From Octopus sinensis (Eukaryota): a DNA stretch of 64,000 nucleotides. The translations under genes were made by a program, and so were the position numbers. The stretch is taken from contig NC_042997.1 of NCBI RefSeq assembly GCF_006345805.1, positions 207,018,001-207,082,000 on the forward strand. The letters are read 5' to 3'. Positions 17,360 to 64,000 of the stretch are shown piece after piece. Below the pieces are notes generated by a model that worked only from the letters and a program-made list of their open reading frames with translations, did no database searches and was not told the DNA's origin. Within the stretch, counting starts at the first letter, position 1. Every line of letters begins with the position of its first letter.

Positions 17360-19005
17360 CTGTAACTGCATTTGATGACCTAAAACTATACGCTACAAAA
17401 TGACAAACAGCTGGAAACACTACAAAAGACAGTTCATGGATTTACCAAAGAAATAGATATGAAATTTTGATTAGAAAAATGCACTAAAGAAACCCTGGAA
17501 AGAGGAAAACTAGGTAAGAGTAGCAACATCACACTAGATAAAGCAAATGAAATAAGAGAATTAGACCAAAGCCAAACTTACAAATATTTAGGAGTCCATG
17601 AACTAGATAAGACACAACACACACAAATGAATGAGAAAATAAAAAAAGAATATCATAGAGGAGCTAGATCAATACTGAAAACAGAGCTCAATGCTAAAAG
17701 CAAGATAATAGGTATTAACACTTTAGCCGTCCCAGTTATAAGTTACAGCTACAATATCCTTAACTGGACACTAAATGAACTGACCAAAGTAGATAGGAAA
17801 ACAAGAAAAATAATGACAGGGTCTAGGATGCATCACCCAAAATCTGACATAGAAAGGCTATATATACAACGTATAGAAAGTGGTAGAGGCCTTATACAGC
17901 TGGAAAACTACTAAAAAATAACCACCATAGGACTGCAAAAATACCTACTTCAGAAGCAAGGAAAACTGATACAAATAGCGGAAAAAACACGAGCAAAACA
18001 AAAAACTGTTCTCAGTATTTAAGGAAGCTGACAAATACAAACAAGAAATCATACCATCTAACAAATATAAAGAAGAAAAAGAAGAAGAAGAAGAAGAAGA
18101 AGAAGAAGAAGAAGAAGAAGAAGAAGAAGAAGGAGAAGAAGAAGAAGAAGGAGAAGAAGAAGAAGAAGGAGGAGGAGGAGGAGGAGGAGGCTATAAAGCA
18201 AATGAAATCCAAACTAAAACTAGAACAGCAACGAGCCATGATAAAACGATGGCAAGAAAAGCTCATTCGTGGCAAATACTGGACTAAACTAAATGCAAAA
18301 GAAATAGACAAAGAAAAATCCCAGCAATGGTTGAGAAGCTCAGGACTCAAAGCAGAGAATGAGGGATTTTTAATTGCAGCACAAGACCAAAGCCTCCCCA
18401 CCAGAAATTACCAAAAACATATAATGAAAAGAAACATAACAAGTAACTGCAGAATATGTGGAGATGGACAAGAAACAATAAATCATATTATCTCTGGCTG
18501 CCCAGTCCTGGCTGAGAAGGAATATATTCACAGACACAACAGAGTTGGGACCTACATACACTGGAAGCTATGCCAGCTCTATGGAATAACAACAGAAAAA
18601 AGATGGTATAGGCACACACCAGAAAAGGTCACAGAAAACGAGAAAGCAACCATACTCTGGGATATGCCAATACACACAGATAAAGAAATTAAAGCCAATA
18701 AGCTGAATTTAGTTGTCAGAGATCATGAAGAAAAAAAAATGCTTTCTAATTGCTGTATCAGTACCAGCGGATGACAATGTTTCTCTAACAGAAAGGGAGA
18801 AACTTTCAAAATACAAAGCCCTGGAATATGGAGTCTAAAAACAGAAACAATTCCTATCATAGTAGGTGCATTAGCTATGATAAAAAAAAAATTCAGACAA
18901 GTACATAACAAAAACACCAGGGCTTACAAGTATATATAACGTAGAGGAAATAGCACAACTAGGCACTGCACACATCCTATGCAGAACACTTTCAATACAG
19001 TAATC
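17360..19005 (+). mobile_element. R4/Dong-like LINE 3' half
   Basis: DDLKLYA, MHHPKSDIERLYI..GRGLIQLE, AAQDQSLPTRNY, CRICGDGQETINHIISGCPVLA (CCHC knuckle), ILWDMPIHTD and IPIIVGALA. Confidence 0.9.
18078..18190. repeat. (GAA)n/(GAG)n microsatellite inside the R4-like ORF
   Basis: Direct reading of a run of gaagaa... grading into gaggag. Confidence 0.95.
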
Positions 19006-37300: not shown

Positions 37301-40300
37301 ACTCTCCTGAAATTGCTGGCCTTGTGCCAAAATTTGAAACCAAAATTCCAGTGATGTTTATGGTCAATAAAATAAGTACCAGTTGAGCACTGGGGTTGAT
37401 GTAATTGACTTTGCCATTGTCCTGAAATTCCTGGCCTTGTGCCAAAATTTGAAACCAAAATTCCAGTGATGTTTATGGTCAATAAAATAAGTACCAGTTG
37501 AGCACTGGGGTTGATGTAATTGACTTAGACACTCTCCTGAAATTCCTGGCCTTGTGCCAAAATCTGAAACCAAAATTCCAGTGATGTTTATGGTGAATAA
37601 AATAAGTATCAGTTGAGCACTGGGGTTGATGTAATTGACTTAGCCATTGACCTGAAATTGCTGACCTTGTGCCAAAATCTGAAACCAAAATTCCAGTGAT
37701 GTTTATTGTCAATAAAATAAGTACCAGTTGAGCACTGGGTTTGATGTAATTGACTTAGCCATTGACCTGAAATTGCTGGCCTTGTGCCAAAAATTGAAAC
37801 CAAAATTCCAGTGATGTTTATGGTCAATAAAATAAGTACCAGTTGAGCACTGGGGTTGATGTAATTGACTTAGCCATTGACCTGAAATTGCTGGCCTTGT
37901 GAGAAAATCTGAAACCAAAATTCCAGTGATGTTTATGGTGAATAAAATAAGTACCAGTTGAGCACTGGGGTTGATGTAATTGACTTTGCCATTGACCTGA
38001 AATTGCTGGCCTTGTGCCAAAATCTGAAACGACAATTCCAGTGATGTTTATGGTCAATAAAATAAGTACCAGTTGAGCACTGGGGTTGATGTAATTGACT
38101 TAGACACTCTCCTGAAATTACTGGTTTTGTGCCAAAATCTGAAACCAAAATTCCAGTGATGTTTATGGTCAATAAAATAAGTACCAGTTGAGCACTGGGG
38201 TTGATGTAATTGACTTTGACACTCTCCTGAAATTGCTGGACTTGTGCCAAAATTTGAAACCAAAATTCCAGTGATGTTTATGGTCAATAAAATAAGTACC
38301 AGTTGAGCACTGGGGTTGATGTAATTGACTTTGCCACTCTCCTGAAATTGCTGGCCTTGTGCCAAAATTTGAAACCAAAATTCCAGTGATGTTTATGGTC
38401 AATAAAATAAGTACCAGTTGAGCACTGGGGTTGATGTAATTGACTTTGCCATCTCCTGAAATTGCTGGCCTTGTGCCAAAATCTGAAACCAAAATTCCAG
38501 TGATGTTTATGGTCAATAAAATAAGTACCAGTTGAGCACTGGGGTTGATGTAATTGACTTAGCCACTCTCCTGAAATTGCTGGCCTTGTGCCAAAATTTG
38601 AAACCAAAATTCCAGTGATGTTTATGGTCAATAAAATAAGTACCAGTTGAGCACTGGGGTTGATGTAATTGACTTTGCCACTCTCCTGAAATTGCTGGCC
38701 TTGTGCCAAAATTTGAAACCAAAATTCCAGTGATGTTTATGGTCAATAAAATAAGTACCAGTTGAGCACTGGGGTTGATGTAATTGACTTAGCCACTCTC
38801 CTGAAATTGCTGGCCTTGTGCCAAAATTTGAAACCAAAATTCCAGTGATGTTTATGGTCAATAAAATAAGTACCAGTTGAGCACTGGGGTTGATGTAATT
38901 GACTTTGCCATTGTCCTGAAATTGCTGGCCTTGTGCCAAAATTGAAACCAAAATTCCAGTGATGTTTATGGTCAATAAAATAAGTACCAGTTGAGCACTG
39001 GGGTTGATGTAATTGACTTAGCCACTCTCCTGAAATTGCTGGCCTTGTGCCAAAATTTGAAACCAAAATTCCAGTGATGTTTATGGTCAATAAAATAAGT
39101 ACCAGTTGAGCACTGGGTTGATGTAATTGACTTAGCCACTCTCCTGAAATTGCTGGCCTTGTGCCAAAATTTGAAACCAAAATTCCAGTGATGTTTATGG
39201 TCAATAAAATAAGTACCAGTTGAGCACTGGGGTTGATGTAATTGACTTTGCCATTGTCCTGAAATTCCTGGCCTTGTGCCAAAATTTGAAACCAAAATTC
39301 CAGTGATGTTTATGGTCAATAAAATAAGTACCAGTTGAGCACTGGGGTTGATGTAATTGACTTAGCCACTCTCCTGAAATTGCTGGCCTTGTGCCAAAAT
39401 TGAAACCAAAATTCCAGTGATGTTTATGGTCAATAAAATAAGTACCAGTTGAGCACTGGGGTTGATGTAATTGACTTTGCCATTGACCTGAAATTGCTGG
39501 CCTTGTGCCAAAATCTGAAACCAAAATTCCAGTGATGTTTATGGTCAATAAAATAAGTACCAGTTGAGCACTGGGGTTGATGTAATTGACTTAGCCATTG
39601 ACCTGAAATTGCTGGCCTTGTGCCAAAAATTGAAACCAAAATTCCAGTGATGTTTATGGTCAATAAAATAAGTACCAGTTGAGCACTGGGGTTGATGTAA
39701 TTGACTTTGCCATTGACCTGAAATTGCTGGCCTTGTGCCAAAATCTGAAACCAAAATTCCAGTGATGTTTATGGTCAATAAAATAAGTACCAGTTGAGCA
39801 CTGGGGTTGATGTAATTGACTTGCCACTCTCCTGAAATTGCTGGCCTTGTGCCAAAATCTGAAACCAAAATTCCAGTGATGTTTATGGTCAATAAAATAA
39901 GTACCAGTTGAGCACTGGGGTTGATGTAATTGACTTGCCACTCTCCTGAAATTGCTGGCCTTGTGCCAAAATCTGAAACCAAAATTCCAGTGATGTTTAT
40001 GGTCAATAAAATAAGTACCAGTTGAGCACTGGGGTTGATGTAATTGACTTAGCCTCTCCTGAAATTGCTGGCCTTGTGCCAAAATCTGAAACCAAAATTC
40101 CAGTGATGTTTATGGTCAATAAAATAAGTACCAGTTGAGCACTGGGGTTGATGTAATTGACTTGCCACTCTCCTGAAATTGCTGGCCTTGTGCCAAAATC
40201 TGAAACCAAAATTCCAGTGATGTTTATGGTCAATAAAATAAGTACCAGTTGAGCACTGGGGTTGATGTAATTGACTTTGCCACTCTCCTGAAATTGCTGG

Positions 40301-43300
40301 CCTTGTGCCAAAATTGAAACCAAAATTCCAGTGATGTTTATGGTCAATAAAATAAGTACCAGTTGAGCACTGGGGTTGATGTAATTGACTTGCCATTCCT
40401 GAAATTGCTGGCCTTGTGCCAAAATCTGAAACCAAAATTCCAGTGATGTTTATGGTCAATAAAATAAGTACCAGTTGAGCACTGGGGTTGATGTAATTGA
40501 CTTTGCCATCTCCTGAAATTGCTGGCCTTGTGCCAAAATCTGAAACCAAAATTCCAGTGATGTTTATGGTCAATAAAATAAGTACCAGTTGAGCACTGGG
40601 GTTGATGTAATTGACTTTGCCACTCTCCTGAAATTGCTGGCCTTGTGCCAAAATCTGAAACCAAAATTCCAGTGATGTTTATGGTCAATAAAATAAGTAC
40701 CAGTTGAGCACTGGGGTTGATGTAATTGACTTTGCCATTGTCCTGAAATTGCTGGCCTTGTGCCAAAATTGAAACCAAAATTCCAGTGATGTTTATGGTC
40801 AATAAAATAAGTACCAGTTGAGCACTGGGGTTGATGTAATTGACTTTGCCATTGACCTGAAATTGCTGGCCTTGTGCCAAAATCTGAAACCAAAATTCCA
40901 GTGATGTTTATGGTCAATAAAATAAGTACCAGTTGAGCACTGGGGTTGATGTAATTGACTTTGCCATTGACCTGAAATTGCTGGCCTTGTGCCAAAATCT
41001 GAAACCAAAATTCCAGTGATGTTTATGGTCAATAAAATAAGTACCAGTTGAGCACTGGGGTTGATGTAATTGACTTTGCCACTCTCCTGAAATTGCTGGC
41101 CTTGTGCCAAAATTTGAAACCAAAATTCCAGTGATGTTTATGGTCAATAAAATAAGTACCAGTTGAGCACTGGGGTTGATGTAATTGACTTTGCCATTTC
41201 CTGAAATTGCTGGCCTTGTGCCAAAATCTGAAACCAAAATTCCAGTGATGTTTATGGTCAATAAAATAAGTACCAGTTGAGCACTGGGGTTGATGTAATT
41301 GACTTGCCATCTCCTGAAATTGCTGGCCTTGTGCCAAAATCTGAAACCAAAATTCCAGTGATGTTTATGGTCAATAAAATAAGTACCAGTTGAGCACTGG
41401 GGTTGATGTAATTGACTTTGCCATTCCTGAAATTGCTGGCCTTGTGCCAAAATCTGAAACCAAAATTCCAGTGATGTTTATGGTCAATAAAATAAGTACC
41501 AGTTGAGCACTGGGGTTGATGTAATTGACTTTGCCATTGACCTGAAATTGCTGGCCTTGTGCCAAAATCTGAAACCAAAATTCCAGTGATGTTTATGGTC
41601 AATAAAATAAGTACCAGTTGAGCACTGGGGTTGATGTAATTGACTTTGACACTCTCCTGAAATTGCTGGCCTTGTGCCAAAATCTGAAACCAAAATTCCA
41701 GTGATGTTTATGGTCAATAAAATAAGTACCAGTTGAGCACTGGGGTTGATGTAATTGACTTTGCCACTCTCCTGAAATTGCTGGCCTTGTGCCAAAATCT
41801 GAAACCAAAATTCCAGTGATGTTTATGGTCAATAAAATAAGTACCAGTTGAGCACTGGGGTTGATGTAATTGACTTTGCCATTGACCTGAAATTGCTGGC
41901 CTTGTGCCAAAATCTGAAACCAAAATTCCAGTGATGTTTATGGTCAATAAAATAAGTACCAGTTGAGCACTGGGGTTGATGTAATTGACTTTGCCATTGA
42001 CCTGAAATTGCTGGCCTTGTGCCAAAATCTGAAACCAAAATTCCAGTGATGTTTATGGTCAATAAAATAAGTACCAGTTGAGCACTGGGGTTGATGTAAT
42101 TGACTTTGCCACTCTCCTGAAATTGCTGGCCTTGTGCCAAAATTTGAAACCAAAATTCCAGTGATGTTTATGGTCAATAAAATAAGTACCAGTTGAGCAC
42201 TGGGGTTGATGTAATTGACTTTGCCACTCTCCTGAAATTGCTGGCCTTGTGCCAAAATCTGAAACCAAAATTCCAGTGATGTTTATGGTCAATAAAATAA
42301 GTACCAGTTGAGCACTGGGGTTGATGTAATTGACTTGCCACTCTCCTGAAATTGCTGGCCTTGTGCCAAATCTGAAACCAAAATTCCAGTGATGTTTATG
42401 GTCAATAAAATAAGTACCAGTTGAGCACTGGGGTTGATGTAATTGACTTGCCACTCTCCTGAAATTGCTGGCCTTGTGCCAAAATCTGAAACCAAAATTC
42501 CAGTGATGTTTATGGTCAATAAAATAAGTACCAGTTGAGCACTGGGGTTGATGTAATTGACTTTGCCACTCTCCTGAAATTGCTGGCCTTGTGCCAAAAT
42601 CTGAAACCAAAATTCCAGTGATGTTTATGGTCAATAAAATAAGTACCAGTTGAGCACTGGGGTTGATGTAATTGACTTGCCACTCTCCTGAAATTGCTGG
42701 CCTTGTGCCAAAATCTGAAACCAAAATTCCAGTGATGTTTATGGTCAAAAAATAAGTACCAGTTGAGCACTGGGGTTGATGTAATTGACTTTGCCACTCT
42801 CCTGAAATTGCTGGCCTTGTGCCAAAATCTGAAACCAAAATTCCAGTGATGTTTATGGTCAATAAAATAAGTACCAGTTGAGCACTGGGGTTGATGTAAT
42901 TGACTTGCCACTCTCCTGAAATTGCTGGCCTTGTGCCAAAATTTGAAACCAAAATTCCAGTGATGTTTATGGTCAATAAAATAAGTACCAGTTGAGCACT
43001 GGGGTTGATGTAATTGACTTTGCCACTCTCCTGAAATTGCTGGCCTTGTGCCAAAATCTGAAACCAAAATTCCAGTGATGTTTATGGTCAATAAAATAAG
43101 TACCAGTTGAGCACTGGGGTTGATGTAATTGACTTTGCCACTCTCCTGAAATTGCTGGCCTTGTGCCAAAATCTGAAACCAAAATTCCAGTGATGTTTAT
43201 GGTCAATAAAATAAGTACCAGTTGAGCACTGGGGTTGATGTAATTGACTTTGCCACTCTCCTGAAATTGCTGGCCTTGTGCCAAAATCTGAAACCAAAAT

Positions 43301-44569
43301 TCCAGTGATGTTTATGGTCAATAAAATAAGTACCAGTTGAGCACTGGGGTTGATGTAATTGACTTTGCCACTCTCCTGAAATTGCTGGCCTTGTGCCAAA
43401 ATCTGAAACCAAAATTCCAGTGATGTTTATGGTCAATAAAATAAGTACCAGTTGAGCACTGGGGTTGATGTAATTGACTTTGCCATTGACCTGAAATTGC
43501 TGGCCTTGTGCCAAAATCTGAAACCAAAATTCCAGTGATGTTTATGGTCAATAAAATAAGTACCAGTTGAGCACTGGGGTTGATGTAATTGACTTTGCCA
43601 CTCTCCTGAAATTGCTGGCCTTGTGCCAAAATCTGAAACCAAAATTCCAGTGATGTTTATGGTCAATAAAATAAGTACCAGTTGAGCACTGGGGTTGATG
43701 TAATTGACTTGCCACTCTCCTGAAATTGCTGGCCTTGTGCCAAAATTGAAACCAAAATTCCAGTGATGTTTATGGTCAATAAAATAAGTACCAGTTGAGC
43801 ACTGGGGTTGATGTAATTGACTTAGCCACTCTGACCTGAAATTGCTGGCCTTGTGCCAAAATCTGAAACCAAATTCCAGTGATGTTTATGGTCAATAAAA
43901 TAAGTACCAGTTGAGCACTGGGGTTGATGTAATTGACTTGCCATTCCTGAAATTGCTGGCCTTGTGCCAAAATCTGAAACCAAAATTCCAGTGATGTTTA
44001 TGGTCAATAAAATAAGTACCAGTTGAGCACTGGGGTTGATGTAATTGACTTTGCCATTGACCTGAAATTGCTGGCCTTGTGCCAAAATCTGAAACCAAAA
44101 TTCCAGTGATGTTTATGGTCAATAAAATAAGTACCAGTTGAGCACTGGGGTTGATGTAATTGACTTTGCCATTGACCTGAAATTGCTGGCCTTGTGCCAA
44201 AATCTGAAACCAAAATTCCAGTGATGTTTATGGTCAATAAAATAAGTACCAGTTGAGCACTGGGGTTGATGTAATTGACTTGCCATTCCTGAAATTGCTG
44301 GCCTTGTGCCAAATCTGAAACCAAAATTCCAGTGATGTTTATGGTCAATAAAATAAGTACCAGTTGAGCACTGGGGTTGATGTAATTGACTTGCCACTTG
44401 ACCTGAAATTGCTGGCCTTGTGCCAAAATCTGAAACCAAAATTCCAGTGATGTTTATGGTCAATAAAATAAGTACCAGTTGAGCACTGGGGTTGATGTAA
44501 TTGACTTTGCCACTCTCCTGAAATTGCTGGCCTTGTGCCAAAATCTGAAACCAAAATTCCAGTGATGTT
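31363..44569. repeat. 115-bp tandem satellite, about 115 units
   Basis: Unit ccaaaattccagtgatgtttatggtcaataaaataagtaccagttgagcactggggttgatgtaattgactt(a/t)gccactctcctgaaattgctggccttgtgccaaaat(t/c)tgaaa repeats head-to-tail with no spacers. Confidence 0.98.
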
Positions 44570-44775
44570 CTAGTATTTATTATAATTAATAGAGATAGTG
44601 TTTACTTAGTATCAGTTAAATGTTGATTATATTTTCCTGTTTGCTAATGTATTATAATAATAACATATCACTTTGTCTTCAAATATTTTTCTCTCTTTAC
44701 CCACTGAACTCCCCAGTTCACCCCTAATCCCTCACCAACGAAATGATTTTATCTTTTTACTTTTTCATAATTTAG

Positions 44776-46224
44776 TTGTGCTGGACGTTTGTAGAAGACG
44801 ACATCAACTGGAAGGTATGAAGGTGAATGTTCAACCGTTCTGGGTACCATGTGAAGAAAATACCATTTCAAGCCAGCAAGTCCATGACTATTTACTACCT
44901 TCCCAGTTCCATCTGACTTTCTTACAGAAACATCAATTAGTATTTGATTCCAAGTTAAAGGAATTGGCTGAAGTAATTTGGAAAGATTCCAAGAGTAATA
45001 AACTCAAATTAAAATATTCTGAAGAAAATTTTGAAGAAATTGAAAAATGTTTGGAAGATTTATTAAATTCCATTACTGTTGAAATTATTTATGTTCCAGA
45101 TGAAATTTTTGAAGACATTGTCAGAACATTTAAAAGTGAAGATGATAAGAAGTATTTTTATTTTGATTTCCGATATCATAAAGTTCATATTTTGGGATTT
45201 GATAAAAGTAGTGTAATTAAAATGAAAAAGAGACTTTTGGATAATCTTAGAACGGAACGTGAGGATGAGTTAAATATTCACGAAAGATGTATTCTGTCTG
45301 GTCTCGAATTTTTTGCGGATGCAGAAAGACAATTTGAAGGTCTAAAAGTCACAGCTGAAAGTAACAAAGTTATTTTTGAAGGCCAGTATTCCAAAGTAAC
45401 TAATTGTCAAAAGAATATGTATGAAATTCTTCGGTCAATTGTAAAATCTGAATTGTGTTTGCCTTTAAATACTGGAATGATCATAAATAAAAAATCAGTG
45501 AAAGAATATCTTGATGAAAAACTGAGAAACAAGAAATGTATCGGTTCATGGGAAACGGGTGATGGTGATTCAGTAATACTTTATGCAAGTGATAAAACAC
45601 ATCTTTCACTTTTGGAAGAAATCATGAAAGAAACTTTTGTTGCCAATACACTGGATTTTGTAGACAAAATTAAGGATACTCCAATTCATGGAATGTGGCT
45701 GACATATTTTGAAAGTCTAAAAGAAGAGTTTCCAGATTTCTGTTTTTTTGGAGAAGATTCTATTGTTGCTGTTGATGCTGTAGTTAATGATATAAAAACC
45801 AAAATTGATAACTTTAAGCAATCTTTAATTTATGAATCTTATATATCGATGCCTCTTGAACATTTCCTCTTTCTTAAAGAGTTCAAAGAACAGGAAATCA
45901 ATGACTTTAGTGGGAAACATAAAATTAAGAATGTGTGTCTCAAAGATAATAAGTTACACCTGGAAGGAACACAAAACCAAATTAGGAAAATGGAAACATT
46001 TATAGAAAACTTAAGAAAAGATATCAGCTCAAAAGAAGAAAACTTTGAAATGTTTGGATTTCAAGAATTTCTGGAAAATGAAGAAGGAAAGAATTTCTTA
46101 TGTAAAATGCAGAAGCAATCTGAGAGCATAATATTAAATTCAGATTTAGGAAGTGAAACAGATGAAATAGTTAATTTTATATTGGAAAATATGGGAGAAG
46201 GTGCAGCAGCCATTGTGCAGAAAG
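44776..46224 (+). CDS. PARP14: PARP14-like gene, large internal exon (end of RRM-like module plus KH-type linker region)
   Basis: Acceptor tttag|TT, donor AAAG|gttagt, 1449 nt open frame with normal composition. It joins the previous exon as SFKEAC-V-VLDVCRRRHQL and ends IVQK-G, as expected just before a macrodomain GD(I/L)T start. The symbol is family-level only because the macro and PARP domains are not in the window. Confidence 0.7.
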
Positions 46225-46267
46225 GTTAGTAATACCATTTTTTATAGTTAATGTTTCTTTTTAGATC

Positions 46268-49974: not shown

Positions 49975-50898
49975 CTCTAACATACCCCCAGGCACACATC
50001 CAAAACAAACACACAAAGACACACATACTTGCACCATATATACGTACACACACAAATACATACTCAATACCAACACACACAAAACGCATAAACACACACA
50101 CGCCACACAGACAAACCCAACACACATGGACACACATACGAACAAACACATACACACACTAGCACACATGCAACACACTAACAAACATTAACCACACACA
50201 TACACACAAACACAGAGAAACCGGCACACATATACACACACATACCTACCAAATCCTAAAAACACACATCTATTTACACCACAATGGACCCTGGGACCAA
50301 TCAAAAACGGCCAACACACACATACACATGTGTGTATATATATATACACACACACTCACACCGTTTTTGACCCCTATACAGACACACATATATACACACG
50401 TGCGCACAAACAGCACCATGACAAATACCAATCATGCACATTCATACACACACACACACACAAACACATGTATATGTATATACACACACACACAAAGACA
50501 CACACACTCGCACCATATATACGCACACACACAAACACATACTCAATACCAACACACACACACACGCCACACAGATACACCCAACAGACATGGACACACA
50601 TACGAACAAACACATATACACTAACGCACACGCAACACACTAACAAACATTAACCACACACATACACACACACTCAAACCGGCACACATATACACATGCC
50701 ATCCTACCAAATTTTAAAAAAACACACATCTATTTACACCACAAGGGACCCTGGGACCAATCAAAAACAGCCCACACACACACACAAACACATGTATACA
50801 TATATATACACACACACAAAGACACACACACTCACATCATTCTGACCTCCATACGGACACACATATACACACGCAGCACCATGCCAAATGCCAATCAC

Positions 50899-50933
<35 letters not shown>

Positions 50934-52100
50934 ACACCAAAACAATCACACACACGGTTGACAAACAGGCACGCATATACACACACCATCCTACCAAATT
51001 TCTAAAAAACACACATCTATTTACACATCAATGGACCCTGGGACCAATCAAAAACGGCCCTCACACACAAACACATGTATACATATATATACACACACAC
51101 AGACACACACACTCACATCATTCTGACCTCCATACAGACACACATATATACACACGCAGCACCATGCCAAATGCCAATCACACACATACATACACCACAC
51201 ACACACACACAACACATGTATATGTATATACACACACACACAAAGACACACACACTCGCACCATATATACGCACACACAAACAAACACATACTCAATACC
51301 AACACACACCACACACGCCACACAGATACACCCAACAGACATGGACACACATACGAACAAACACATATACACTAACGCACACGCAACACACTAACAAACA
51401 TTAACCACACACATACACACACACTCAAACCGGCACACATATACACATGCCATCCTACCAAATTTTAAAAAAACACACATCTATTTACACCACAAGGGAC
51501 CCTGGGACCAATCAAAAACGCCAACACACACATACACATGTGTGTATATATATATACACACACACACAAAGACACACACACTCACATCATTCTGACCTCC
51601 ATACGGACACACACATATACACACGCAGCACCATGCCAAATGCCAATCACACACATACATACATACATACACACACCACACACAACACCAAAACAATCAC
51701 ACACACGGTTGACAAACAGGCACGCATATACACACACCATCCTACCAAATTTCTAAAAAACACACATCTATTTACACATCAATGGACCCTGGGACCAATC
51801 AAAAACGGCCCTCACACACAAACACATGTATACATATATATACACACACACAGACACACACACTCACATCATTCTGACCTCCATACAGACACACATATAT
51901 ACACACGCAGCACCATGCCAAATGCCAATCACACACATACATACACACACACACACAAACACAACACCAAGACAATCACACACACGGTTGAAAAACGGGC
52001 ACACATATACACACACACCATCCTACCAGATTTTACAAACACACAGACACATCTATTCACACCACATATGTATATACACACACACTCAAACCATTCTGAC
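49975..52100. repeat. Compound CA-rich tandem repeat with 751-bp higher-order period
   Basis: The core cctaccaaat..acacatctatttacac..ggaccctgggaccaatcaaaaac occurs at ~50245, 50703, 50990, 51454 and 51741, with a partial copy at ~52022. Both 50703->51454 and 50990->51741 are 751 bp. Confidence 0.9.
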
Positions 52101-52331
52101 CTCTAAAGACCAATCCCCCAAATCATTGATGCTTGAGGGAGAGACAAAAAGGAGAAATTATTTTCAGTTCCACATTACTCCTCCTTCCCCCCACCCAAAC
52201 ACACCTACAGTGTCCCTTGAAATAGATAATATTCTTTTACGTTAACATGGTGGACAGGTCAGTTTTAGCTTCCCTATTATTATGTCAACCTTTTTGAACT
52301 CATAATATTCTTTGCGTGTATATCAATGTTC

Positions 52332-52844: not shown

Positions 52845-52872
<28 letters not shown>

Positions 52873-53180
52873 ATATATATCTAAAGACGAGAATGTGTGT
52901 CCGTCTGTCTGTGTGAATCCTGAAAATTGAGAACTACACAACCAATTTCATTCAAATTTTACACATGCCTTACTTAGGGTCCATATAGTGTCATAGGCCA
53001 AAAAACTTTTTAACTTCTGGCTAGTGTGAGCCCAGAGCAATATCATATCATCTCCACTATTTCAGTATTACGTGTCAAAAGTGAAACAATAACATCGCTT
53101 TATTGTAACGTCACATTCTTTCTCTTTAATAGTTTACTTTAGTACTGAAACAATTAAAGTGAAACTCTAATCTCACATAT
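52845..53180 (+). mobile_element. Probable 5' end of a non-autonomous Helitron
   Basis: (TA)n-ctaaagacgagaatgtgtgtccgtctgtctgtgtg..gaactacacaaccaatttcattcaaatttt resembles, from recall, the 5' architecture of Lep1-type Helitrons. Not verified. Confidence 0.4.
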
Positions 53181-53258
53181 ATACAGGCATACATACATAT
53201 ATACATACATACATATATACATACATACATATATACATACATACATATATATAATATA

Positions 53259-56200
53259 CTAGCAGAGATACCCGGCATTGCTCGGTTACATTCAATTGAA
53301 GAATTAGACTTTTCTGTTATATATACATGGATACACACACACACACATATATGTATATTAATATAAATACATGAAAGTACATGAAGTTTGTTAAAAAAAG
53401 GGGGATCATGTATATACCTCCTGGCTGTTGAGATTATGACACCTCGTTGTAAACAATGTTCCTTGTTTTTCCTTGTGGAGCATATACAAAAAGGTTTCTT
53501 TTGGTTCCTACTCTTGAGCAGCCAACATACAGTTGCCCATGCGAGAAGCAGGGCTCTTCCAAGAGAAGACCAGCTACAGAGAGGGTTTGACCCTGAGATT
53601 TGTTAATGGACATGGCAAAGCTGACACGAAGGGGGAATTGCAGTCTTCCAAATGTAAATGGAATTTCTGCTCCTGATGGAGTAAGAGGAAATCTTGGAAT
53701 AAAGACGTCATCACTTTTTCCACATCCAGAAAGAATGATCACCTCGATAACATGTGACATCATTTTCTTTATCACCAGTCATGTTCCATTGCAAAGTATT
53801 GGTGGTTCCAGATTGCGGAGTAGCATTACAGGAGTTCCAACTTTAAGTGCTATGTGTGGAGGTAGTCGAGGAGGCTCCAGTGAATTGAGAAATTCAGGAG
53901 GATAGTTCACAACTTCATTTATATCTGGAATTGTATCAACAGACTTGTAAGTGTGTATAGTGCCGGGAAGAGAATGCATTAGCTGTTGATTAATTTTGTT
54001 AACAGCGACGTTTTTTGGAGCTAATATTGCTCTTTCACACAGCCAATTGTGATTTTGGTAGTTTTGTGTGAAGTTGGGAAAGACTTTGTTTTTGAGGTCA
54101 TCTACAGAATTAACAACAGAGGAAAATGACCACACTTCCATTTGTCCTGCAGCATCAAGAGGCATCTTGCCTTCACCAAGTCTCAAAATGTCCTGTGCAA
54201 ACTTTGTGGACATTTTGTCGCCGTGTAGCAGAGCTCTCATGTTAGTGGTGAGACTGAGGATTGTAACATGATGCCACAGGGTAGAGGACTTTAGGCATGC
54301 TTGGACTTCATCTGCTCTAGTGCCTTTCGGAATGACAGGAAGAGTTTGCCTGAAATCACCTGACAACAGAAGCGTTACACCTCCCATTGGAGCCTGACAG
54401 TCTTGGATGTCTTTAAGGGCTCTATCTAATGCTTCCAAAGCTCCCTTGTGAGCCATAGTGCACTCATCCCAGACAATTAGATGACACATTTTAAGTACTT
54501 GTCCCTGATCTGAGCTTTTGTTGATATTGCATGAAGACATTTCGGATGCTGCTAAATTGAGAGGGAGTTTGAAAGTTGAGTGTGCTGTCCTGCCACCAGG
54601 TTACAAAGTAGCTGCAATGCCAGAGGAGGCTACAGCTACTGCAATGTCCTGATGCTGCCTAACTTCTGCAAGGAGAAGCTTTGTAATAAATGTTTTTCCT
54701 GTCCTTCCAGGAGCATCGAGGAAGAAGATTCGTCTCTCGCGTTGACATACACTGTTAAGAATAGTTCTGTAGGCCTGCAGCTGGTCCGGAAGTAGTTTAG
54801 GCTCATTTTCAACAATGTACTTTGAAAGCGCTTGAGTGTCGTAGGTTGTTTCACGGATGACAGCAGTGGGAAGGCTATTTGACCCTGACCTGAATGCTTT
54901 TGGCAGGCCATACGTCGACAATTCATTTACACCCAGTTTAGCAATTCTGTCTTCAATGTCAATGAGTGTTTTGTTATAGATTTCATTGCTGATACCCTCC
55001 ATGTCAGGATAGAGCAGTTGAGCTTGGCGCTGAAAGTCTTCAACCGGGTTGTCTCTATATTTGAGCCATAGAGTAGCCGGATCCCACAGTTCGCATGCCT
55101 GTAGTAATACTGCATATAGTGCCCTGAGACTTTTAGGTGATTGTGATAAAGCAGCCTCTCCTAAAGTTGCATCCCATTGTGCACCATCTTCTAACAGACC
55201 TTGTCGATAGCAGGCTTCTCTGTATGTTGTGCAGACATGTCCATGAACGGTTTTTAGGACCTGGAAAGACGTTGGCCCTCTGACCTCATGCAGTAGTAGA
55301 CGAAGGTAGAAGCACTCTTGTTGAGTGGGATGCACTGTGTATACTCGCCCAAGGCAAGTGTAAAACTTAATGCCAGGGTATCCATGAACATTTTGACCTG
55401 CTTTCCGTGGGGCCCATTTTTTACATTCCAAGTGTAGCACGATGGAATCTGTGGATACAGCAAGGTTTGAGCGAATGGATCCACTTGACAAAGCTTGAAG
55501 AATGCAGTGAGTGTGCTATCCCTTGGTTCATCTGCCAACAGAGAAGCATTAGCAACGGTGAAGTACACTCTTTGACCATTTTCCAGGTGCACTGCAAGCT
55601 GTTGAATGGCGGGGTGTCGTTGATGAATTGGAAAGCCAAAGATGCGCCAGAAAGCCTCATTGCTACTTATGTACCGTCCCACCTGATAATGCGTCGCCTC
55701 ATCCTGGCAGTATTCTTGTTGAAGTCCAAACATTGCAGCGTCAGAACCCTTTTTTACATTTTTGAAAGCGTACTTGATGGATTTAACGGAGTTGCAAAAC
55801 TCAACGTTGATGTGGGCATTGAAAGTCATTGACAGGAGTGGGCAGTATGGAACAATCCATCTATTATCAATATCGTGCTGTCCGATAATTGTTGTGAAAC
55901 CTCCGTCTTCTAGTTTTCTGCGTTTGTATGATGGTTACCCATCAACACCTGTCTGAGTTTCTCTTAGGAACCTCCTTGGAAACCTTTTTGAACATATACT
56001 GTCCTTCAAGCATGGTGAGTTCTTGTTGAATCCACGCCCACATGGACCATGTACCATGTTTGCTTTAACTATTTCGTATAGTTCTTTGTCTAAGGCTGGA
56101 TCAGGAAGCTCTGCAGAGATTATCTTGTCGATGTCATTGGAATTGATCTTCACTGAGAGCCAAAGCAGGATATGAGCATGTGGAAGGCCCCTTTTTTGCC

Positions 56201-59200
56201 ACTCGACTGTGTACATGTCACATTGTATGGGCCCAAAGACTTGCCCTTATTGTATGAGCTCCATGAGAGAAATTAACTTCAGATGGAAAACTCAGGTGAG
56301 GAAGTCATGCTTGTCTTTAGGCTTTTGACCGAAGAAGAGTTCGGCCTGAATCTCCTTCCACTTGGGATTGCATGTGAAAGTTATGAATAGGTTGGGCCTG
56401 CCGTAATGGTGGACAAAGGTCATTGCATCCTGTGTTCTTTCATGCATATATCGGGGACTTCCAGTGAATGTAGAAGGCAAGATGCAAAGTCTTCCTATGT
56501 TTGTTGGAGCAGCATCATTGTTGATAGCATCTCGGAGATGGATGTAGCTGTCAGATCGCAATTTGTTTGATGTAACCTGATGAAACACAATCTCTCTGAT
56601 TCCATTTTTGCGCACATATCGACTGCAAATTGATGAAACAGCTCTCGAGACTGGTGGAGGTGATTACAGCAGTTGTTTCGGGTCATAAATCTGTATGAGT
56701 AGAAGTCTATGGAGGATACTGGCTTGTTGAGATGTTCATTAAGATTTTGAGGATGTTGCAGTAGTAGACCGATGTGGTAGCCATCCTCACCGTTAACAAA
56801 CAGAAGTGGGTATTGGAGTGAATCGTGTGTTTCACTAATTCATTGGAGGGTGGTGTCTCTGGGATTGTGCTGTTCACCGTGAAGGAGTACAGCTATTTCA
56901 TTGCATGTGGATGCATTGTAACGGCCTGCATGTTCCCTAGATGGTCTTTTCTGGGCATCAATGATAACATTAAAATTTGATGAATCTTCTGTTTCCAAGG
57001 TATACTTGAAGATGCGTACGTAGCTATTTTTCTGGTGCAAAAGGTCTTGCAGTTGCATTATCAAGTGAAAGTTAGTACCTGTGGAAATGGAATTTCGCCG
57101 GGTGGCTTACTCATGTAAATTACCTACAAAGTACAGTTGAAGGAATTGAGGATCTTGATTTTCAGCAGGTTCGAGTGATCCTATCCTATGGTAAACCTGT
57201 CCCTGCACTTTGAAAGTTGGCATAAACCCGCCTTCTTGAACAACATTAGCGCCGAAAGATGTCATTTAAAATGCACAATTGTACTTCCGGATGTTATTCA
57301 GGAAATGTTTCGACTCTGTAGTTGTGCCAGCGTAGAGTGACTTTCAGAGCTGTGGTGGATCCTGCAGTGGAGTGAGGTTAACATTCCCATTAGCGCAAAA
57401 CTTTGCAGGAGTTTCTCTTGACCACATCTTAGCATTGCCGAAATAGCAAGTGATGGAAATATCGCTAATGTTCATATCCGGGTGGCAATCATAATGAAAT
57501 TTAGGGTTATATTGGAAAAACTTTAATAACAATCGTGAGTTGCATGTCGTTCAGAATTCTCGTGGGAGAGAACTTTGTTGAGTTGAAGTCTGCAGCATAG
57601 TACATCTCTGTTGTAAGGTGTAAGAAGCTCACGCAGCAGCCATCTTAGTAGCATTCCCGAGCAGGCGTGAAGCGCATTCGTTTTTCTACTCAGCAGCTCG
57701 AGTAGCAGCAGTTCAGGCAGCATCATCAGTTCGTCGGGCTTGAAATTGGAGTTCACTATCTGCAGCTTGCTCGGCAGCAGTTCAGGCAGCATCAGCAGTT
57801 CACCGAACTTGAAACTGGAGTTCAGTTTCTGCAGCTGGCACAGCAGCAGTTGAGGCAGCATCAGCAGTTCATCGAACTTGAAACTGGAGTTCAGTTTCTG
57901 CCGCTCGCACAGCAGCAGTTGAGGCAGCATCAGCAGTTCGTCGACCTTGAAACTGGAGTTCAGTTTCTGCCGCTCGCACAGCAGCAGTTGAGGCAGCATC
58001 AGCAGTTCGTCGAACTTGAAACTGGAGTTCAGTTTCTGCAGCTGGCACAGCAGCAGTTGAGGCAGCATCAGCAGTTCATCGAACTTGAAACTGGAGTTCA
58101 GTTTCTGCAGCTGGGACAGCAGCAGTTGAGGCAGCATCAGCAGTTCATCGAACTTGAAACTGGAGTTCAGTTTCTGCAGCTGGCACAGCAGCAGTTGAGG
58201 CAGCATCAGCAGTTCGTCGAACTTGAAACTGGAGTTCAGTTTCTGCAGCTGGCACAGCGGCCGTTGAGGCAGCATCAGCATTTCGTCGAACTTGAAACTG
58301 GAGTTCAGTTTCTGCAGCTGGCACAGCAGCAGTTGAGGCAGCATCAGCAGTTCGTCGAACTTGAAACTGGAGTTCAGTTTCTGCAGCTGGGACAGCAGCA
58401 GTTGAGGCAGCATCAGCAGTTCGTCGAACTTGAAACTAGAGTTCAGTTTCTGCAGCTGGCACAGCAGCAGTTGAGGCAGCGTAAGCAGTTCATCGAACTT
58501 GAAACTGGAGTTAAGTTTCTGCAGCTGGCACAGCAGCAGTTGAGGCAGCATCAGCAGTTCGTCGAACTTGAAACTGAAGTTCAGTTTCTGCAGCTGGCAC
58601 AGCAGCAGTTGAGGCAGCATCAGCAGTTCGTCGAACTTGAAACTGGAGTTCAGTTTCTGCAGCTGGCACAGCAGCAGTTGAGGCAGCATCAGCAGTTCAT
58701 CGAACTTGAAACTGGAGTTCAGTTTCTGCAGCTGGCACAGCAGCAGTTGAGGCAGCATCAGCAGTTCGTCGAACTTAAAACTGGAGTTTAGTTTCTGCAG
58801 CTGGCACAACAGCAGTTGAAGCAGCATCAGCCGTTTGTCGAACTTGAAACTGGAGTTCAGTTTCTGCAGCTGGGACAGCAGCAGTTGAGGCAGCATCAGC
58901 AGTTCGTCGAACTTGAAACTGGAGTTCAGTTTCTGCAGCTGGCACAGCAGCAGTTGAGGCAGCATCAGCAGTACATCGAACTTGAAACTGGAGTTCAGTT
59001 TCTGCAGCTGGCACAGCAGCAGTTGAGGCAGCATCAGCAGTTCATCGAACTTGAAACTGGAGTTCAGTTTTGCAGCAGCTGCAGCAGCAGCAGCAGTTGA
59101 GGCAGCATCAGCAGTTCATCGAACTTGAAACTGGAGTTCAGTTTCTGCAGCTGGCACAGCAGCAGTTGAGTCAACATCAGCAGTTCATCGAACTTGAAAC

Positions 59201-62200
59201 TGGAGTTGAGTTTCTGCAGCTTGCACAGCAGCAGTTGAGGCAGCATCAGCAGTTCGTAGAACTTGAAACTGGAGTTCAGTTTCTGCAGCTGGCACAGCAG
59301 CAGTTGAGGCAGCATCAACAGTTCGTCGAACTTGAAACTGGAGTTCAGTTTCTGCAGCTGGCACAGCAGCAGCAGTGAGGCAGCATCAGCAGTTCATCGA
59401 ACTTGAAACTCGAGTTCAGTTTCTGCAGCTGGCACAGCAGCAGTTGAGGCAGCATCAGCAGTTCATCGAACTTGAAACTGGCGTTCAGTTTCTGCAGCTG
59501 GCACAGCAGCAGTTGAGGCAGCATCAGCAGTTCATCGAACTTGAAACTGGCGTTCAGTTTCTGCAGCTGGCACAGCAGCAGTTGAGGCAGCATAAGCAGT
59601 TCATCGAACTTGAAAATGGCGTTCAGTTTCTGCAGGTGGCACAGCAGCAGTTGAGGCAGCATCAACAGTTCGTCGAACTTGAAACTGGAGTTCAGTTTCT
59701 GCAGCTGGCACAGCAGCAGTTGAGGCAGCATCAGCATTTCGTCGAACTTGAAACTGGAGTTCAGTTTCTGCAGGTGGCACAGCAGCAGTTGAGGCAGCAT
59801 CAGCATTTCGTCGAACTTGAAACTGGAGTTCAGTTTCTGGAGCTGTTATAGCAGCAGTTGAAGCAGCATCAGCAGTTCATCGAACTTGAAACTGGAGTTC
59901 GGTTTCTGCAGCTGGCACAGCAGTATTTGAAGCAGCATCAGCAGTTCATCGAACTTGAAACTGGAGTTCAGTTTCTGCAGCTGGCACAGCAGCATTTGAG
60001 ACAGCATCAGGAGTTCATCGAACTTGAAACTGGAGTTCATTTCTGCAGCTCGAACAGCAGCAGTTGAACCAGCATCAACAGTTCATCGAACTTGAAACTG
60101 GAGTTCAATTTCTGCAGCTGGCACAGCAGCAGTTGAGGCAGCATCAGCAGTTCATCGAACTTGAAACTGGAGTTCATTTTCTGCAGCTCGAACAGCAGCA
60201 GTTGAGGCAGCATCAACAGTTCGTCGAACTTGAAACTGGAGTTCAGTTTCTGCAGCTGGCACAGCAGCAGTTGAGGCAGCATCAGCAGTTCCTCGAACTT
60301 GAAACTGGCGTTCAGTTTCTGCAACTGGCACAGCAGCAGTTGAGGCAGCATCAGCAGTTCATCGAACTTGAAACAGGCGTTCAGTTTCTGCAGCTGGCAC
60401 AGCAGCAGTTGAGGCAGCATCAGGAGTTCATCGAACTTGAAACTGGAGTTCAGTTTCTGCAGCTGTCACAGCAGCAGTTGAAGCAGCATCAGCAGTTCAT
60501 CGAACTTGAAACTGGAGTTCATTTTCTGCAGCTCGAACAGCAGCAGTTGAGGCAGCATCAGCAGTTCATCGAACTTGAACCTGGAGTTCAGATTCTGCAG
60601 CTGGCACAGCAGCAGTTGAGGCAGCATCAGCAGTTCATCGAACTTGAAACTGGAGTTCAGTTTCTGCAGCTGGCACAGCAGCAGTTGAGGCAGCATCAGC
60701 AGTTCACCGAACTTAAGACTGGAGTTTAGTTTCTGCAGCTGGCACAGCAGCAGTTGAGGCGGAGTCAGCAGTTCATCGAACTTGAAAGTGGAGTTCAGTT
60801 TCTGCAGCTGGCACAGCAGCAGTTGATGCAGCATCAGCAGTTCATCGTACTTAAGACTGGAGTTTAGTTTCTGCAGCTGGCACAGCAGCAGTTGAAGCAG
60901 CATCAGCAATTCATCGAACTTGAAACTGGAGTTCATTTCTGCAGCTCGAACAGCAGCAGTTGAGGCAGCATCAGCAGTTCATCGAACTTGAAAGTGGATT
61001 TCAGTTTCTGCAGCTGGCACAGCAGCAGTTGATGCAGCATCAGTAGTTCATCGAACTTGAAACTAGATTTCAGTTTCTGCAGCTTGAACAGCAGCAGTTG
61101 AGTCAGCATCAGCATTTCGTCCAACTTGAAACTGGAGTTCAGTTTCTGCGGCTGACACAGCAGCAGTTGAAGCAGCATCAGCAGTTCATCGAACTTGAAA
61201 CTGGAGTTCGGTTTCTGCAGCTGGCACAGCAGCATTTGAAGCAGCATCAGCAGTTCATCGAACTTGAAACTGGAGTTCAGTTTCTGCAGCTAGCACAGCA
61301 GCAGTTGAGGCAGCATAAGCAGTTCATCGAACTTGGAACTGGAGTTGAGTTTCTGCAGCTTGCAGAGCAGCAGTTGAGGCAGCATCAGCAGTTCATCGAA
61401 CTTGAAACTGGAGTTCAGTTTCTGCAGCTGGCACAGCAGCAGTTGAGTCAACATCAGCAGTTCATCGAACTTGAAACTGGAGTTGAGTTTCTGCAGCTTG
61501 CACAGCAGCAGTTGAGGCAGCATCAGCAGTTCGTAGAACTTGAAACTGGAGTTCAGTTTCTGCAGCTGGCACAGCAGCAGTTGAGGCAGCATCAGCAGTT
61601 CGTCGAACTTGAAACTGGAGTTCAGTTTCTGCAGCTGGCACAGCAGCAGTTGAGGCAGCATCAGCAGTTCATCGAACTTGAAACTGGAGTTCAGTTTCTG
61701 CAGCTGGCACAGCAGCAGTTGAGGCAGCATCAGCAGTTCATCGAACTTGAAACTGGCGTTCAGTTTCTGCAGCTGGCACAGCAGCAGTTGAGGCAGCATA
61801 AGCAGTTCATCGAACTTGAAAATGGCGTTCAGTTTCTGCAGCTGGCACAGCAGCAGTTGAGGCAGCATCAGCAGTTCATCGAACTTGAAACTGGCGTTCA
61901 GTTTCTGCAGCTGGCACAGCAGCAGTTGAGGCAGCATAAGCAGTTCATCGAACTTGAAAATGGCGTTCAGTTTCTGCAGGTGGCACAGCAGCAGTTGAGG
62001 CAGCATCAGCAGGTCATCGAACTTGAGACTGGAGTTCAGTTTCTGCAGGTGGCACAGCAGCAGTTGAGGCAGCATCAGCACTTCATCGAACTTGAAACTG
62101 GAGTTCAGTTTCTGCAGCTGGCACAGCAGCAGTTGAGGCAGCATCAGCAGTTCGTCGAACTTGAACCTGGAGTTCAGATTCTGCAGCTGGCACAGCAGCA

Positions 62201-64000
62201 GTTGAGGCAGCATCAGCAGTTCATCGAACTTGAACCTGGAGTTCAGATTCTGCAGCTGGCACAGCAGCAGTTCAGACAGCATCAGCAGTTCATCGAACTT
62301 GAAATTGGAGTTCAGTTTCTGCAGCTCGAACAGCAGCAGTTGAGGCAGCATCTGCACTTCATCGAACTTGAAACTGGAGTTCAGTTTCTGTAGCTTGCAC
62401 AGTAGCATTTGAGGCAGCATCAGTAGTTCATCGAACTTGAAACTGGCGTTCAGTTTCTGCAGCTGGCACAGCAGCAGTTGAGGCAGCATCTGCACTTCAT
62501 CGAACTTGAAACTGGAGTTCAGTTTCTGCAGCTGGCACAGCAGCAGTTGAAGCAGCATCAGCAGTTCATCGAACTTGAAACTGGAGTTCATTTTCTGCAG
62601 CTCGAACAGCAGCAGTTGAGGCAGCATCAGCACTTCATCGAACTTGAAACTGGAGTTCAGTTTATGCAGCTGGCACAGCAGCATTTGAAGCAGCATCAGC
62701 AGTTCATCGAACTTGAAACTGGATTTCAGTTTCTCCAGCTGGCACAGCAGCAGTTGAAGCAGCATCAGCAGTTCATCGATATTGAAACTGGAGTTCAGTT
62801 TCTGCAGCTGGCACAGCAGCATTTGAAGCAGCATCAGCACTTCATCGAAATTGAAACTGGAGTTCATTTTCTGCAGCTCGAACAGCAGCAGTTGAAGCAG
62901 CATCAGCCGTTCGTCGAACTTGAAACTGGAGTTCAGTTTCTGCAGCTGGCACAGCAGCAGTTGAAGCAGCATCAGCCGTTCGTCGAACTTGAAACTGGAG
63001 TTCAGTTTCTGCAGCTGGCACAGTAGCAGTTGAAGCAGCATCAGCCGTTCGTCGAACTTGAAACTGGAGTTCAGTTTCTGCAGCTGGCACAGCAGCAGTT
63101 GAAGCAGCATCAGTCGTTCGTCGAATTTGAAACGAGTTCAGTTTCTGCAGCTGGCACAGCAGCAGTTGAGGCAGCATCAGCCGTCCGTCGAACTTGAAAC
63201 TGGAGTTCAGTTTCTGCAGCTGTTATAGCAGCAGTTGAAGCAGCATCAGCCGTTCGTCGAACTTGAAACGAGTTCAGTTTCTGCAGCTGGCACAGCAGCA
63301 GTTGAGGCAGCATCAGGAGTTCATCGAACTTGAAACTGGAGTTCAGTTTCTGCAGCTGGCACAGCAGCAGTTGAAGCAGCATCAGCCGTTCGTCGAACTT
63401 GAAACTGGAGTTCAGTTTCTTCAGCTCGCACAGCAGCAGTTGAGGCAGCATCAGCCGTTGTCGAACTTGAAACGAGTTCAGTTTCTGCAGCTGGCACAGC
63501 AGCAGTTGAGGCAGCATCAGAGTTCATCGAACTTGAAACTGGAGTTCAGTTTCTGCAGCTGGGACAGCAGCAGTTGAGGCAGCTCAGCAGTCGTCGAACT
63601 TGAAACTTGAAACTGGAGTTCAGTTTCTGCAGCTGGCACAGCAGCAGTTGAGGCAGCATCAGGAGTTCATTTTCGAAACTTGAAACTGAGTTCAGTTTCT
63701 GCAGCTGGCACAGCAGCAGTTGAGGCAGCATCAGCAGTTCGTCGAACTTGAAACTGGAGTTCAGTTTCTGCAGCTGGCACAGCAGCAGTTGAGGCAGCAT
63801 CAGCAGTTCGTCGAACTTGAAACTGGAGTTCAGTTTCTGCAGCTGGCACAGCAGCAGTTGAGGCAGCATCAGCAGTTCGTCGAACTTGAAACTGGAGTTC
63901 AGTTTCTGCCGCTGGCACAGCAGCAGTTGAGGCAGCATCAGCAGTTCATCGAACTTGAAACTGGAGTTCAGTTTCTGCAGCTGGCACAGCAGCAGTTGAG
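53259..64000 (-). mobile_element. Helitron (decayed Rep/Pif1-helicase), 3' terminus intact, 5' part running out of the window
   Basis: The 3' end on the minus strand is hairpin ccgagcaatgccggg, then tatctctg, CTAG (53259-53262) and T. Rep motifs are GRPNLFITFTCNPKW and YTVEWQKRGLPHAHILLWL. Helicase motifs are FFLDAPGRTGKTF, IVWDECTMAH, LSGDFRQTLP, FAMSINKSQGQTL and HGQLYVGCSRV. There are many stops and frameshifts. Confidence 0.93.
57691..64000 (-). repeat. 69-bp tandem array (~90 units in window) encoding a 23-aa STPR-like repeat in the Helitron frame
   Basis: The + unit is cagcagcagttgaggcagcatcagcagttc(a/g)tcgaacttgaaactggagttcagtttctgcagctggca. The minus frame reads (P/R)AAETELQFQVR(R/*)TADAASTAAV. 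Confidence 0.97.

Follow-up and report, generated by a model that had tools for sequence, protein, structure and literature searches.

Analysis of a 64,000-nucleotide stretch of the Octopus sinensis genome (NCBI RefSeq assembly GCF_006345805.1, contig NC_042997.1, positions 207,018,001 to 207,082,000 of the forward strand; this whole stretch is called the window, and position 1 is its first letter) reveals at its end a tandem array of 69-bp units which, read on the minus strand, leads into the decayed RepHel gene of a Helitron. It is very likely, in our judgement, that this array results from the satellite-type amplification, in place, of a minisatellite coding for STPR repeats, within a dead copy of an autonomous Helitron of the HLE1 type. 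The ancestral RepHel would have consisted of an MPRRK start, about five STPR-like units of 23 residues, a zinc-finger-like region, the Rep domain and a PIF1 helicase. One internal 69-bp unit would then have been amplified where it stood, a few copies becoming 91 or more over at least 6.3 kb, presumably by replication slippage and by unequal exchange between sister chromatids or homologues. Most or all of this amplification would have affected DNA that was no longer coding, in a dead or dying copy, and its product would be a satellite-like non-coding array, probably devoid of present function, and no giant DNA-binding domain.

Tandem Repeats Finder (TRF) describes a single array at window positions 57704–64000, with a period of 69 bp, 91.2 copies, 93% matches, a score of 10628 and no indels at this level of description. 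Strict-anchor segmentation, on which the table of units was built, delimits 91 units on the minus strand, from 63981 down to 57698. The array is cut by the window end at 64000, so that 91 units and 6.3 kb are lower bounds. A first reading of the DNA from its letters alone (the sequence-only reading) had reported a 69-bp array of at least 6.3 kb at the end of the window, and the 91 units with 93% match at 57698–64000 agree with it. The 69-mer was found nowhere else within the 64-kb window, and BLAST self-comparison did not resolve any higher-order structure of the array. The minus-strand frame sharing the phase of the downstream gene will be called the STPR frame; in it, the consensus unit reads AAETELQFQVRRTADAASTAAVP. 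Exactly 69 nt are found in 81 of the 91 units. The STPR frame is interrupted by a stop in 58 units and indels are present in ten, causing about eight frame switches along the array, and 30 of the 91 units are free of both kinds of lesion. Pairwise divergence among units is 6.8%, and divergence from the consensus 4.2%. The units nearest to the unique sequence are more divergent, in a graded manner: unit 89 reads ..TAAEQ and unit 90 reads AADSELQFQARRTDDAA*TAATR (asterisks stand for stop codons), and they are followed, outside the array, by one degenerate unit at 57697–57629. These three correspond to the divergent, ancestral-looking units that had been noticed where the array ends. Past the degenerate unit the frame runs on, with stops and without frameshift, into LLKFFQYNPKFHYDCHP...CANGNVNLTPLQDPP. 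The sequence-only reading had followed one minus-strand frame from the repeats into the start of RepHel; continuous phase with RepHel is indeed found over the proximal stretch from 59008 down to 57629 and onwards from there, and it is limited to that stretch, the array as a whole not being in one frame.

The downstream region had been taken for a decayed RepHel, and the protein-level comparisons confirm it. The gene lies on the minus strand beyond the proximal end of the array (57598–53434), with the zinc-finger-like region and the start of Rep in frame -1 (57598–56567). Pfam searches give a Helitron_like_N match on the decayed frame (E 8.9e-6), and PIF1 (4.1e-36) and Pif1_2B (6.9e-11) matches on the open reading frame (ORF) at 53779–54540. 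The proteins closest to these regions are Octopus bimaculoides Helitron models (P0001, P0108 and P0012), at 77–88% identity, and the Rep/HUH part alone has 177 homologues, of which the top one, from O. bimaculoides, is 77% identical. With two or more frameshifts and no fewer than eight in-frame stops, the RepHel body of the window copy is dead. At the nucleotide level, a helicase piece of 122 bp (window 54913–55034) matches an O. sinensis locus (L004, 8547–8668, GCA_006345805.1) with 96.7% identity, and O. bimaculoides copies are 85–89% identical to the same piece.

In O. bimaculoides, the P0108 locus (CM046602.1, here L003) contains a more complete member of this Helitron family. Window positions 56857–53335 align to L003 10498–14022 at 89.3%, and 57897–56854 align to L003 9368–10412 at 84.8%, the latter alignment crossing the junction between unique and repeated sequence without a break. 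On the repeat side of this junction, TRF finds 2.9 copies of the homologous 69-bp repeat in L003 (9376–9577). They lie inside an ORF that begins with MPRRK at the ATG at 9223, and from this ATG the frame reads MPRRKTSSIGHETAKAATSSARR / ANESSLETDIRRSQNAERTTTSR / TLQTDHQRTLRRSADAASTADAR / AAET*HQRQVRRSADVASTVAAQ / AAETQYQRKVRRSADCASTAAAR / AAEKK..., so that, by reading, about five STPR-like units (u1 to u5) precede the zinc-finger-like region. The degenerate window unit at 57697–57629 is the positional counterpart of u5. The identity of the window consensus to u2, u3 and u4 is 72%, 81% and 78%, respectively, the amplified unit being closest to u3. The L003 units differ among themselves by 16–26%, as against 6.8% for the window units, and the bodies of the two elements diverge by about 11%. 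Homology between the two copies ends at the same 3' boundary, where the window has an end of the CTRR type, CTAG at 53262–53259 followed by T (window 53324–53256 compared with L003 14769–14838, both with CTAG and then TAT). By eye, a weak sub-terminal stem of 5 bp rich in GC (CCGaGC/GCCGG) can be placed about 10 nt before CTAG; it is poorly conserved in L003.

The number of units in other relatives is low as well. In a more distant octopus relative (L002, the P0002 locus), a 69-bp repeat of its own is present in 3.3 copies, and the proteins of relatives contain 3–7 units of 23 residues. No 69-bp repeat was found upstream in L004 or in L005 (O. bimaculoides), which are loci of copies from more distant families. 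The P0001 locus (L001) is 5'-truncated at the equivalent of window position 57602 and flanked by assembly gaps, and it is therefore uninformative on unit number. From these sequences, the norm of the family is a few old, diverged units; the 91 or more units of the window are young and homogeneous and go back to an internal one. The sequence-only reading had likewise set a usual complement of a few repeats against about 90 or more at this locus, and the comparison within one family, approximately 3–5 in L003 versus at least 91 in the window, bears this out.

The lesions carried by the units are informative about the state of the DNA when it was amplified. An identical 2-bp deletion (columns 18–19) is present in units 7, 10 and 12, and an identical 1-bp deletion (column 10) in units 44 and 57. 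A block of seven units, stop-bearing ones among them, has been duplicated: units 29, 30 and 32–36 reappear as units 63–69 with 0, 0, 0, 2, 1, 0 and 0 differences, random pairs of units having 5.0 on average. The TGA stop at column 33 (CGA>TGA), found in 56 units, is clustered along the array (30 runs versus 44 ± 4.5 in permutations, p ~0.001), and the neighbouring CpG at column 30, three bases upstream, shows C>T in none of the 91 units; this stop is therefore identical by descent and not the result of recurrent deamination. The 80 substitution types fall on codon positions 1, 2 and 3 in the numbers 30, 26 and 24. They comprise 22 synonymous, 52 non-synonymous and 6 stop changes, for a neutral expectation of 0.30/0.66/0.04, and thus fit neutrality, without coding constraint. 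Taken together, the shared frameshifts, the duplicated block, the descent of the stop and the neutral pattern point to amplification of already non-coding DNA. At this single locus the array has the features of a satellite (at least 6.3 kb head-to-tail, 4.2% from the consensus, duplicated seven-unit blocks, neutral substitutions), and it becomes obvious from the unit table that it grew by the copying of one unit, two or as many as seven at a time.

The same data bear on the possibility that the array is the relic of an active RepHel with an oversized STPR domain, tens of units long, which expanded while it was coding and was subject to decay and homogenisation only later. Such a history would agree with a unit period that is a multiple of three (81 of 91 units having exactly 69 nt), with the phase shared by the proximal 20 units and RepHel and with the 30 units lacking stops and indels. 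We nevertheless consider it decidedly improbable, as identical frameshifts and stop-bearing blocks have themselves been amplified, neither third-position nor synonymous changes are in excess, and L003 and all relatives carry 3–7 units; moreover, the amplified unit has lost basic residues (net charge -1, compared with +3 for L003 u4) and no predicted protein with the window repeat exists among 5.8 billion clusters. Both histories had been offered by the sequence-only reading; the satellite born from a coding repeat is the one we favour, at the expense of the relic of a giant modular RepHel. An assembly artefact, by which a short repeat would have been over-expanded or mis-joined, is very unlikely: the array does run to the window edge and the O. 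bimaculoides comparators are gappy around such elements, but the units are non-identical, and their 80 substitution types, private indels and ordered blocks argue for real sequence. Finally, an unrelated, pre-existing satellite abutting or inserted beside a 5'-truncated Helitron, with a coincidental 23-residue reading, is scarcely credible, even though L001 ends near window position 57602 with no repeat upstream and a second large satellite, of 115-bp units, occurs in the same window, because L003 is colinear across the same junction, with three homologous units on its repeat side, and the family has few old units where the window has young copies of an internal one; the 72–81% identity of the array consensus to u2–u4, the graded divergence of the junction-proximal units and the phase of the array frame with RepHel go in the same direction.

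The STPR domain is defined by a strict period of 23 residues, with conserved Glu1, Thr/Ser2 and Arg9 and a capping Gln5 (PMC4856987), and HELIANO names STPRs as one of the domains with which HLE1 Helitrons show a stable association (PMC11417382). In the window unit (ETELQFQVR..) E1, T2, Q5 and R9 are all present, and the Arg is invariant across the unit alignment. At the same position in Helitron homologues, Pfam detects significant STPRs in P0002 (3e-7), P0013 (1e-9), P0036 (8e-22), P0075 (3e-7) and P0137 (3e-20), and P0085 too has 23-residue units before RepHel that match Pfam STPRs. These six proteins, like the HELIANO data, substantiate what the sequence-only reading had put forward, namely that STPR repeats precede RepHel in animal Helitrons. 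Comparison of three-unit rows from the window family with those of canonical Helitron STPRs by hhalign aligns columns 1–65 to columns 1–65, with a probability of 96.5% and an E-value of 9.3e-10. A home-made unit profile (23 columns, 30 units from seven relatives) scores 20.9 bits on four copies of the window unit, for a shuffle mean of -15 with a standard deviation of 8; this score was reached by 1 of 2000 shuffles, and the remaining five reading frames score nothing with this profile. When 1.84 billion representatives were searched exhaustively with phmmer, 19 matches were obtained, among them the Helitron N-termini P0127, P0134 and P0137, the P0134 unit AAESEQQNETRRIRNAASTAAAR being identical to the window unit at 13 of 23 residues. 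Most of the other 16 matches are periodic but unrelated proteins, such as caspase, CARD and LRR proteins. When the STPR-frame peptide was compared by a word-indexed method with 5.8 billion proteins, it had no match. The DNA-contact residues Arg6, Leu10, Tyr16 and Arg20 are replaced by F6, R10, S16 and V20 in the window unit, whose net charge is -1, that of L003 u4 being +3 and those of other Helitron units 0 to +3. Judged by its sequence, the window unit is best described as a divergent Helitron-type STPR repeat whose membership is not demonstrable by the Pfam criterion.

Several observations weigh against the above interpretation. Pfam STPRs (PF21107) gave no match at E<=10, either for six copies of the consensus with TGA restored to CGA, a translation that the sequence-only reading had put forward as a check and that thus finds no counterpart in this family, or for a stop-free stretch of 96 residues. 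FMBP-1 chains were not found in a PDB sequence search with the window peptide, and even the L003 N-terminus, with 15.3 bits for Pfam STPRs, stays below the cutoff of 27. Since direct matches fail, the case for STPR is built on where the units lie, on their period and key residues and on transitive profile evidence: of the resemblance to STPR repeats claimed at the outset, the period, the residues Glu1, Thr2, Gln5 and Arg9, the 96.5% hhalign match and the rarity among shuffles (1 of 2000) stand, and a match to Pfam STPRs or FMBP-1 does not. Periodic peptides yield spurious matches, and because most of the phmmer matches are unrelated periodic proteins, the E-values of periodic queries are unreliable when taken alone. 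A single-sequence AlphaFold2 model is of low confidence (predicted local distance difference test score, pLDDT, 63), shows strands and not helices, where STPR repeats are all-alpha and bind in the major groove of DNA, and was treated as uninformative. The same-family comparison rests on one informative copy, L003 of O. bimaculoides, and the 5' end of the Helitron and the distal end of the array lie beyond window position 64000. As to timing, gene conversion in an array that was already long could mimic shared lesions, so that amplification after the death of the element is, strictly, unproven.

The top PDB sequence matches, 3eex_A and 3cka_A (to window 58148–58435, minus strand), are engineered OspA proteins with a 23-residue β-hairpin repeat (..ELSFKLITRADKSST..); they probably reflect periodicity and F/V substitutions, not homology. 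Two array frames other than the STPR frame contain long stop-free ORFs (..QLLLCQLQKLNSSFKFDELLMLP.., ..QQLRQHQQFIELETGVQFLQLA..; listed in Table 1), which owe their existence solely to the lack of stops in the consensus when read that way; neither homologues nor family matches were found for them. Stop-free alternative frames of up to 606 residues are a trap for gene predictors, which matters for annotation. The sole match of two such frames in the word-indexed search of 5.8 billion proteins is P0121 (UniRef A0A0L8HCH8, O. bimaculoides), a 'ubiquitinyl hydrolase 1' model whose first ~90 residues are 23-residue repeats (MLPQLLLHELQRLQHNVQFDLQE). These repeats represent the +1 frame of a Helitron STPR-coding repeat, and the first exon of the model is probably chimeric or mis-annotated.

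Table 1. Coordinates of the Helitron parts, the 69-bp array and the open reading frames across it (window positions).
Feature	Positions	Strand (frame)	Evidence
69-bp tandem array, 91 visible units, STPR-like 23-mer, now non-coding	57698..64000	-	TRF, unit table, colinearity with L003 9376-9577
Degenerate last STPR-like unit outside the array, AAE*KNECASRLLGNATKMAAA*	57697..57629	-	Translation; pairwise alignment to L003 9568-9637
Linker, zinc-finger-like N-terminal region and Rep start, 5 in-frame stops	56567..57628	- (frame -1, that of the proximal array units)	tblastn P0001 residues 1-354 at 77% identity; translation; Helitron_like_N
Rep (HUH endonuclease, Helitron_like_N), in-frame stops	55509..56594	- (frame -3)	tblastn P0001, P0004, P0108; translation
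PIF1-type helicase, stop codon 53436-53434	53434..55110	- (frame -2)	Pfam; tblastn P0012, P0050, P0059; ORF list
Helitron 3' untranslated/terminal region, internal (TG)n, end ...TCTCTGCTAG at 53259, then T	53259..53433	-	Alignment to L003
503-aa ORF, non-STPR frame	57523-59034	-	
606-aa ORF, non-STPR frame	61290-63110	-	
431-aa ORF, non-STPR frame	61098-62393	+	
313-aa ORF, non-STPR frame	57850-58791	+	

Beside the 3' end of the element lies an (ACAT)n run (53175–53251). As a preference of STPR for (ATAC)n is known (PMC4856987), the run was considered as an STPR-related site; this was rejected, because nothing of the kind is present at the CTAG end of L003 and because the run adjoins another repeat, element X. 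This microsatellite-bordered repeat of ~0.3–0.4 kb is found at window 52870–53192, L003 14060–14467 (inverted) and L001 9923–9999. It adjoins or sits inside the Helitron family in all three loci, in differing positions and orientations: after the 3' end in the window, before the terminal 70 bp in L003 and abutting the truncated 5' end in L001. Repeat X may be a microsatellite-targeting element, or the association may be a chance effect of high abundance.

Elsewhere in the window, a second array (31363–44569, 13.2 kb) consists of 115.2 copies of a 115-bp unit with 96% match. Its monomer is 74–84% similar, over ~80–115 bp, to dispersed single copies in L002, L003 and L004 (O. bimaculoides and O. 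sinensis), and this array probably derives from an interspersed element resembling short interspersed elements (SINEs). The window is a repeat-rich region where mobile-element fragments become tandem arrays, a setting that agrees with the mechanism proposed for the 69-bp array. A strongly C/A-skewed block (50146–52245, GC skew -0.64) contains ~283-bp units, two copies each at 50675–51216 and 51426–52045, alternating with long impure (CA)n. Retroelement debris occurs at 95–565, 14810–15205, 16563–17000 and 18202–18774, and includes two RVT_1 fragments, one of them with a PHD finger, and a zf-RVT ORF; a weak, sub-threshold GIY-YIG match in it (20.6 bits, cutoff 22.6) may point to a Penelope-like element. 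An ORF of 518 residues (44673–46229, plus strand), located between the 115-bp satellite and retroelement-like ORFs, has no Pfam match.

Transposon-derived satellites are well documented, and tandem repeats of Helitrons and Helentrons are a speciality of molluscs, their seeds being non-coding central repeats. In the literature searched, no report was found of a satellite-size array seeded by the STPR-coding repeat of a transposase, and HELIANO is the only source there to link STPRs with Helitrons. It is unlikely, though it would be of wider interest, that the 69-bp unit is the monomer of a real satellite family in this octopod, with many long arrays, possibly seeded at several sites by transposition of Helitron copies in which the repeat was already expanded; protein-level traces of the 69-bp repeat in any open frame were limited to P0121, and a metagenome scan for the unit and an Rfam search each found 0. 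Were such a genome-wide family to exist, a satellite monomer could be traced base by base to the protein-coding, DNA-binding repeat of a transposase.

The array may be compared with four known systems. With the STPR domain (Pfam PF21107; Bombyx mori FMBP-1, human ZNF821) it shares the strict 23-residue period, the key residues and the in-register profile match. It differs in the number of units (~4–7 in STPR domain proteins, at least 91 and no longer coding in the window), in the absence of Arg6, Leu10, Tyr16 and Arg20, in its net charge of -1 and in having no direct match to Pfam STPRs or FMBP-1. With the N-terminal STPRs of animal HLE1 Helitrons (HELIANO, PMC11417382), the array shares its place directly upstream of the RepHel zinc-finger-like region, and the MPP/RKK-type start is common to many relatives. 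Two octopus proteins, P0002 and P0013, score above the Pfam STPRs threshold, whereas the units of the window family are a divergent, Ala/Ser/Thr-rich subtype below it; HELIANO treats STPRs only as a recurrent accessory domain and gives no expansion of a coding repeat. Satellite-like arrays are well known from non-autonomous Helentrons/Helitrons, with Cg_HINE of Crassostrea gigas as the mollusc example (PMC7492417) and DINE-TR1 as the one from Drosophila (cited in PMC6947457). The likeness lies in a tandem array inside a rolling-circle transposon, with satellite-type homogenisation. Yet the Cg_HINE and DINE-TR1 arrays are short and non-coding, occupy the centre of non-autonomous elements and spread by transposition, whereas the window array would have been seeded by the transposase's own protein-coding repeat, belongs to an autonomous but dead copy and is known from one locus. 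Coding minisatellites (variable numbers of tandem repeats, VNTRs) in genes for repeat-domain proteins likewise have units that are multiples of three and evolve by slippage and unequal exchange; unlike them, the window array is free of constraint, carries stops and frameshifts and is of satellite size. What the locus adds to these systems is a full trail in one place, from the end of the zinc-finger-like region outward through graded, ancestral-looking units to a homogeneous array, with the sister copy L003 supplying the starting state of about five units. It thus offers a clean teaching case for the birth of tandem arrays and suggests, so far from a single locus, that the coding repeat of a transposase DNA-binding domain can seed a satellite once constraint is lost.

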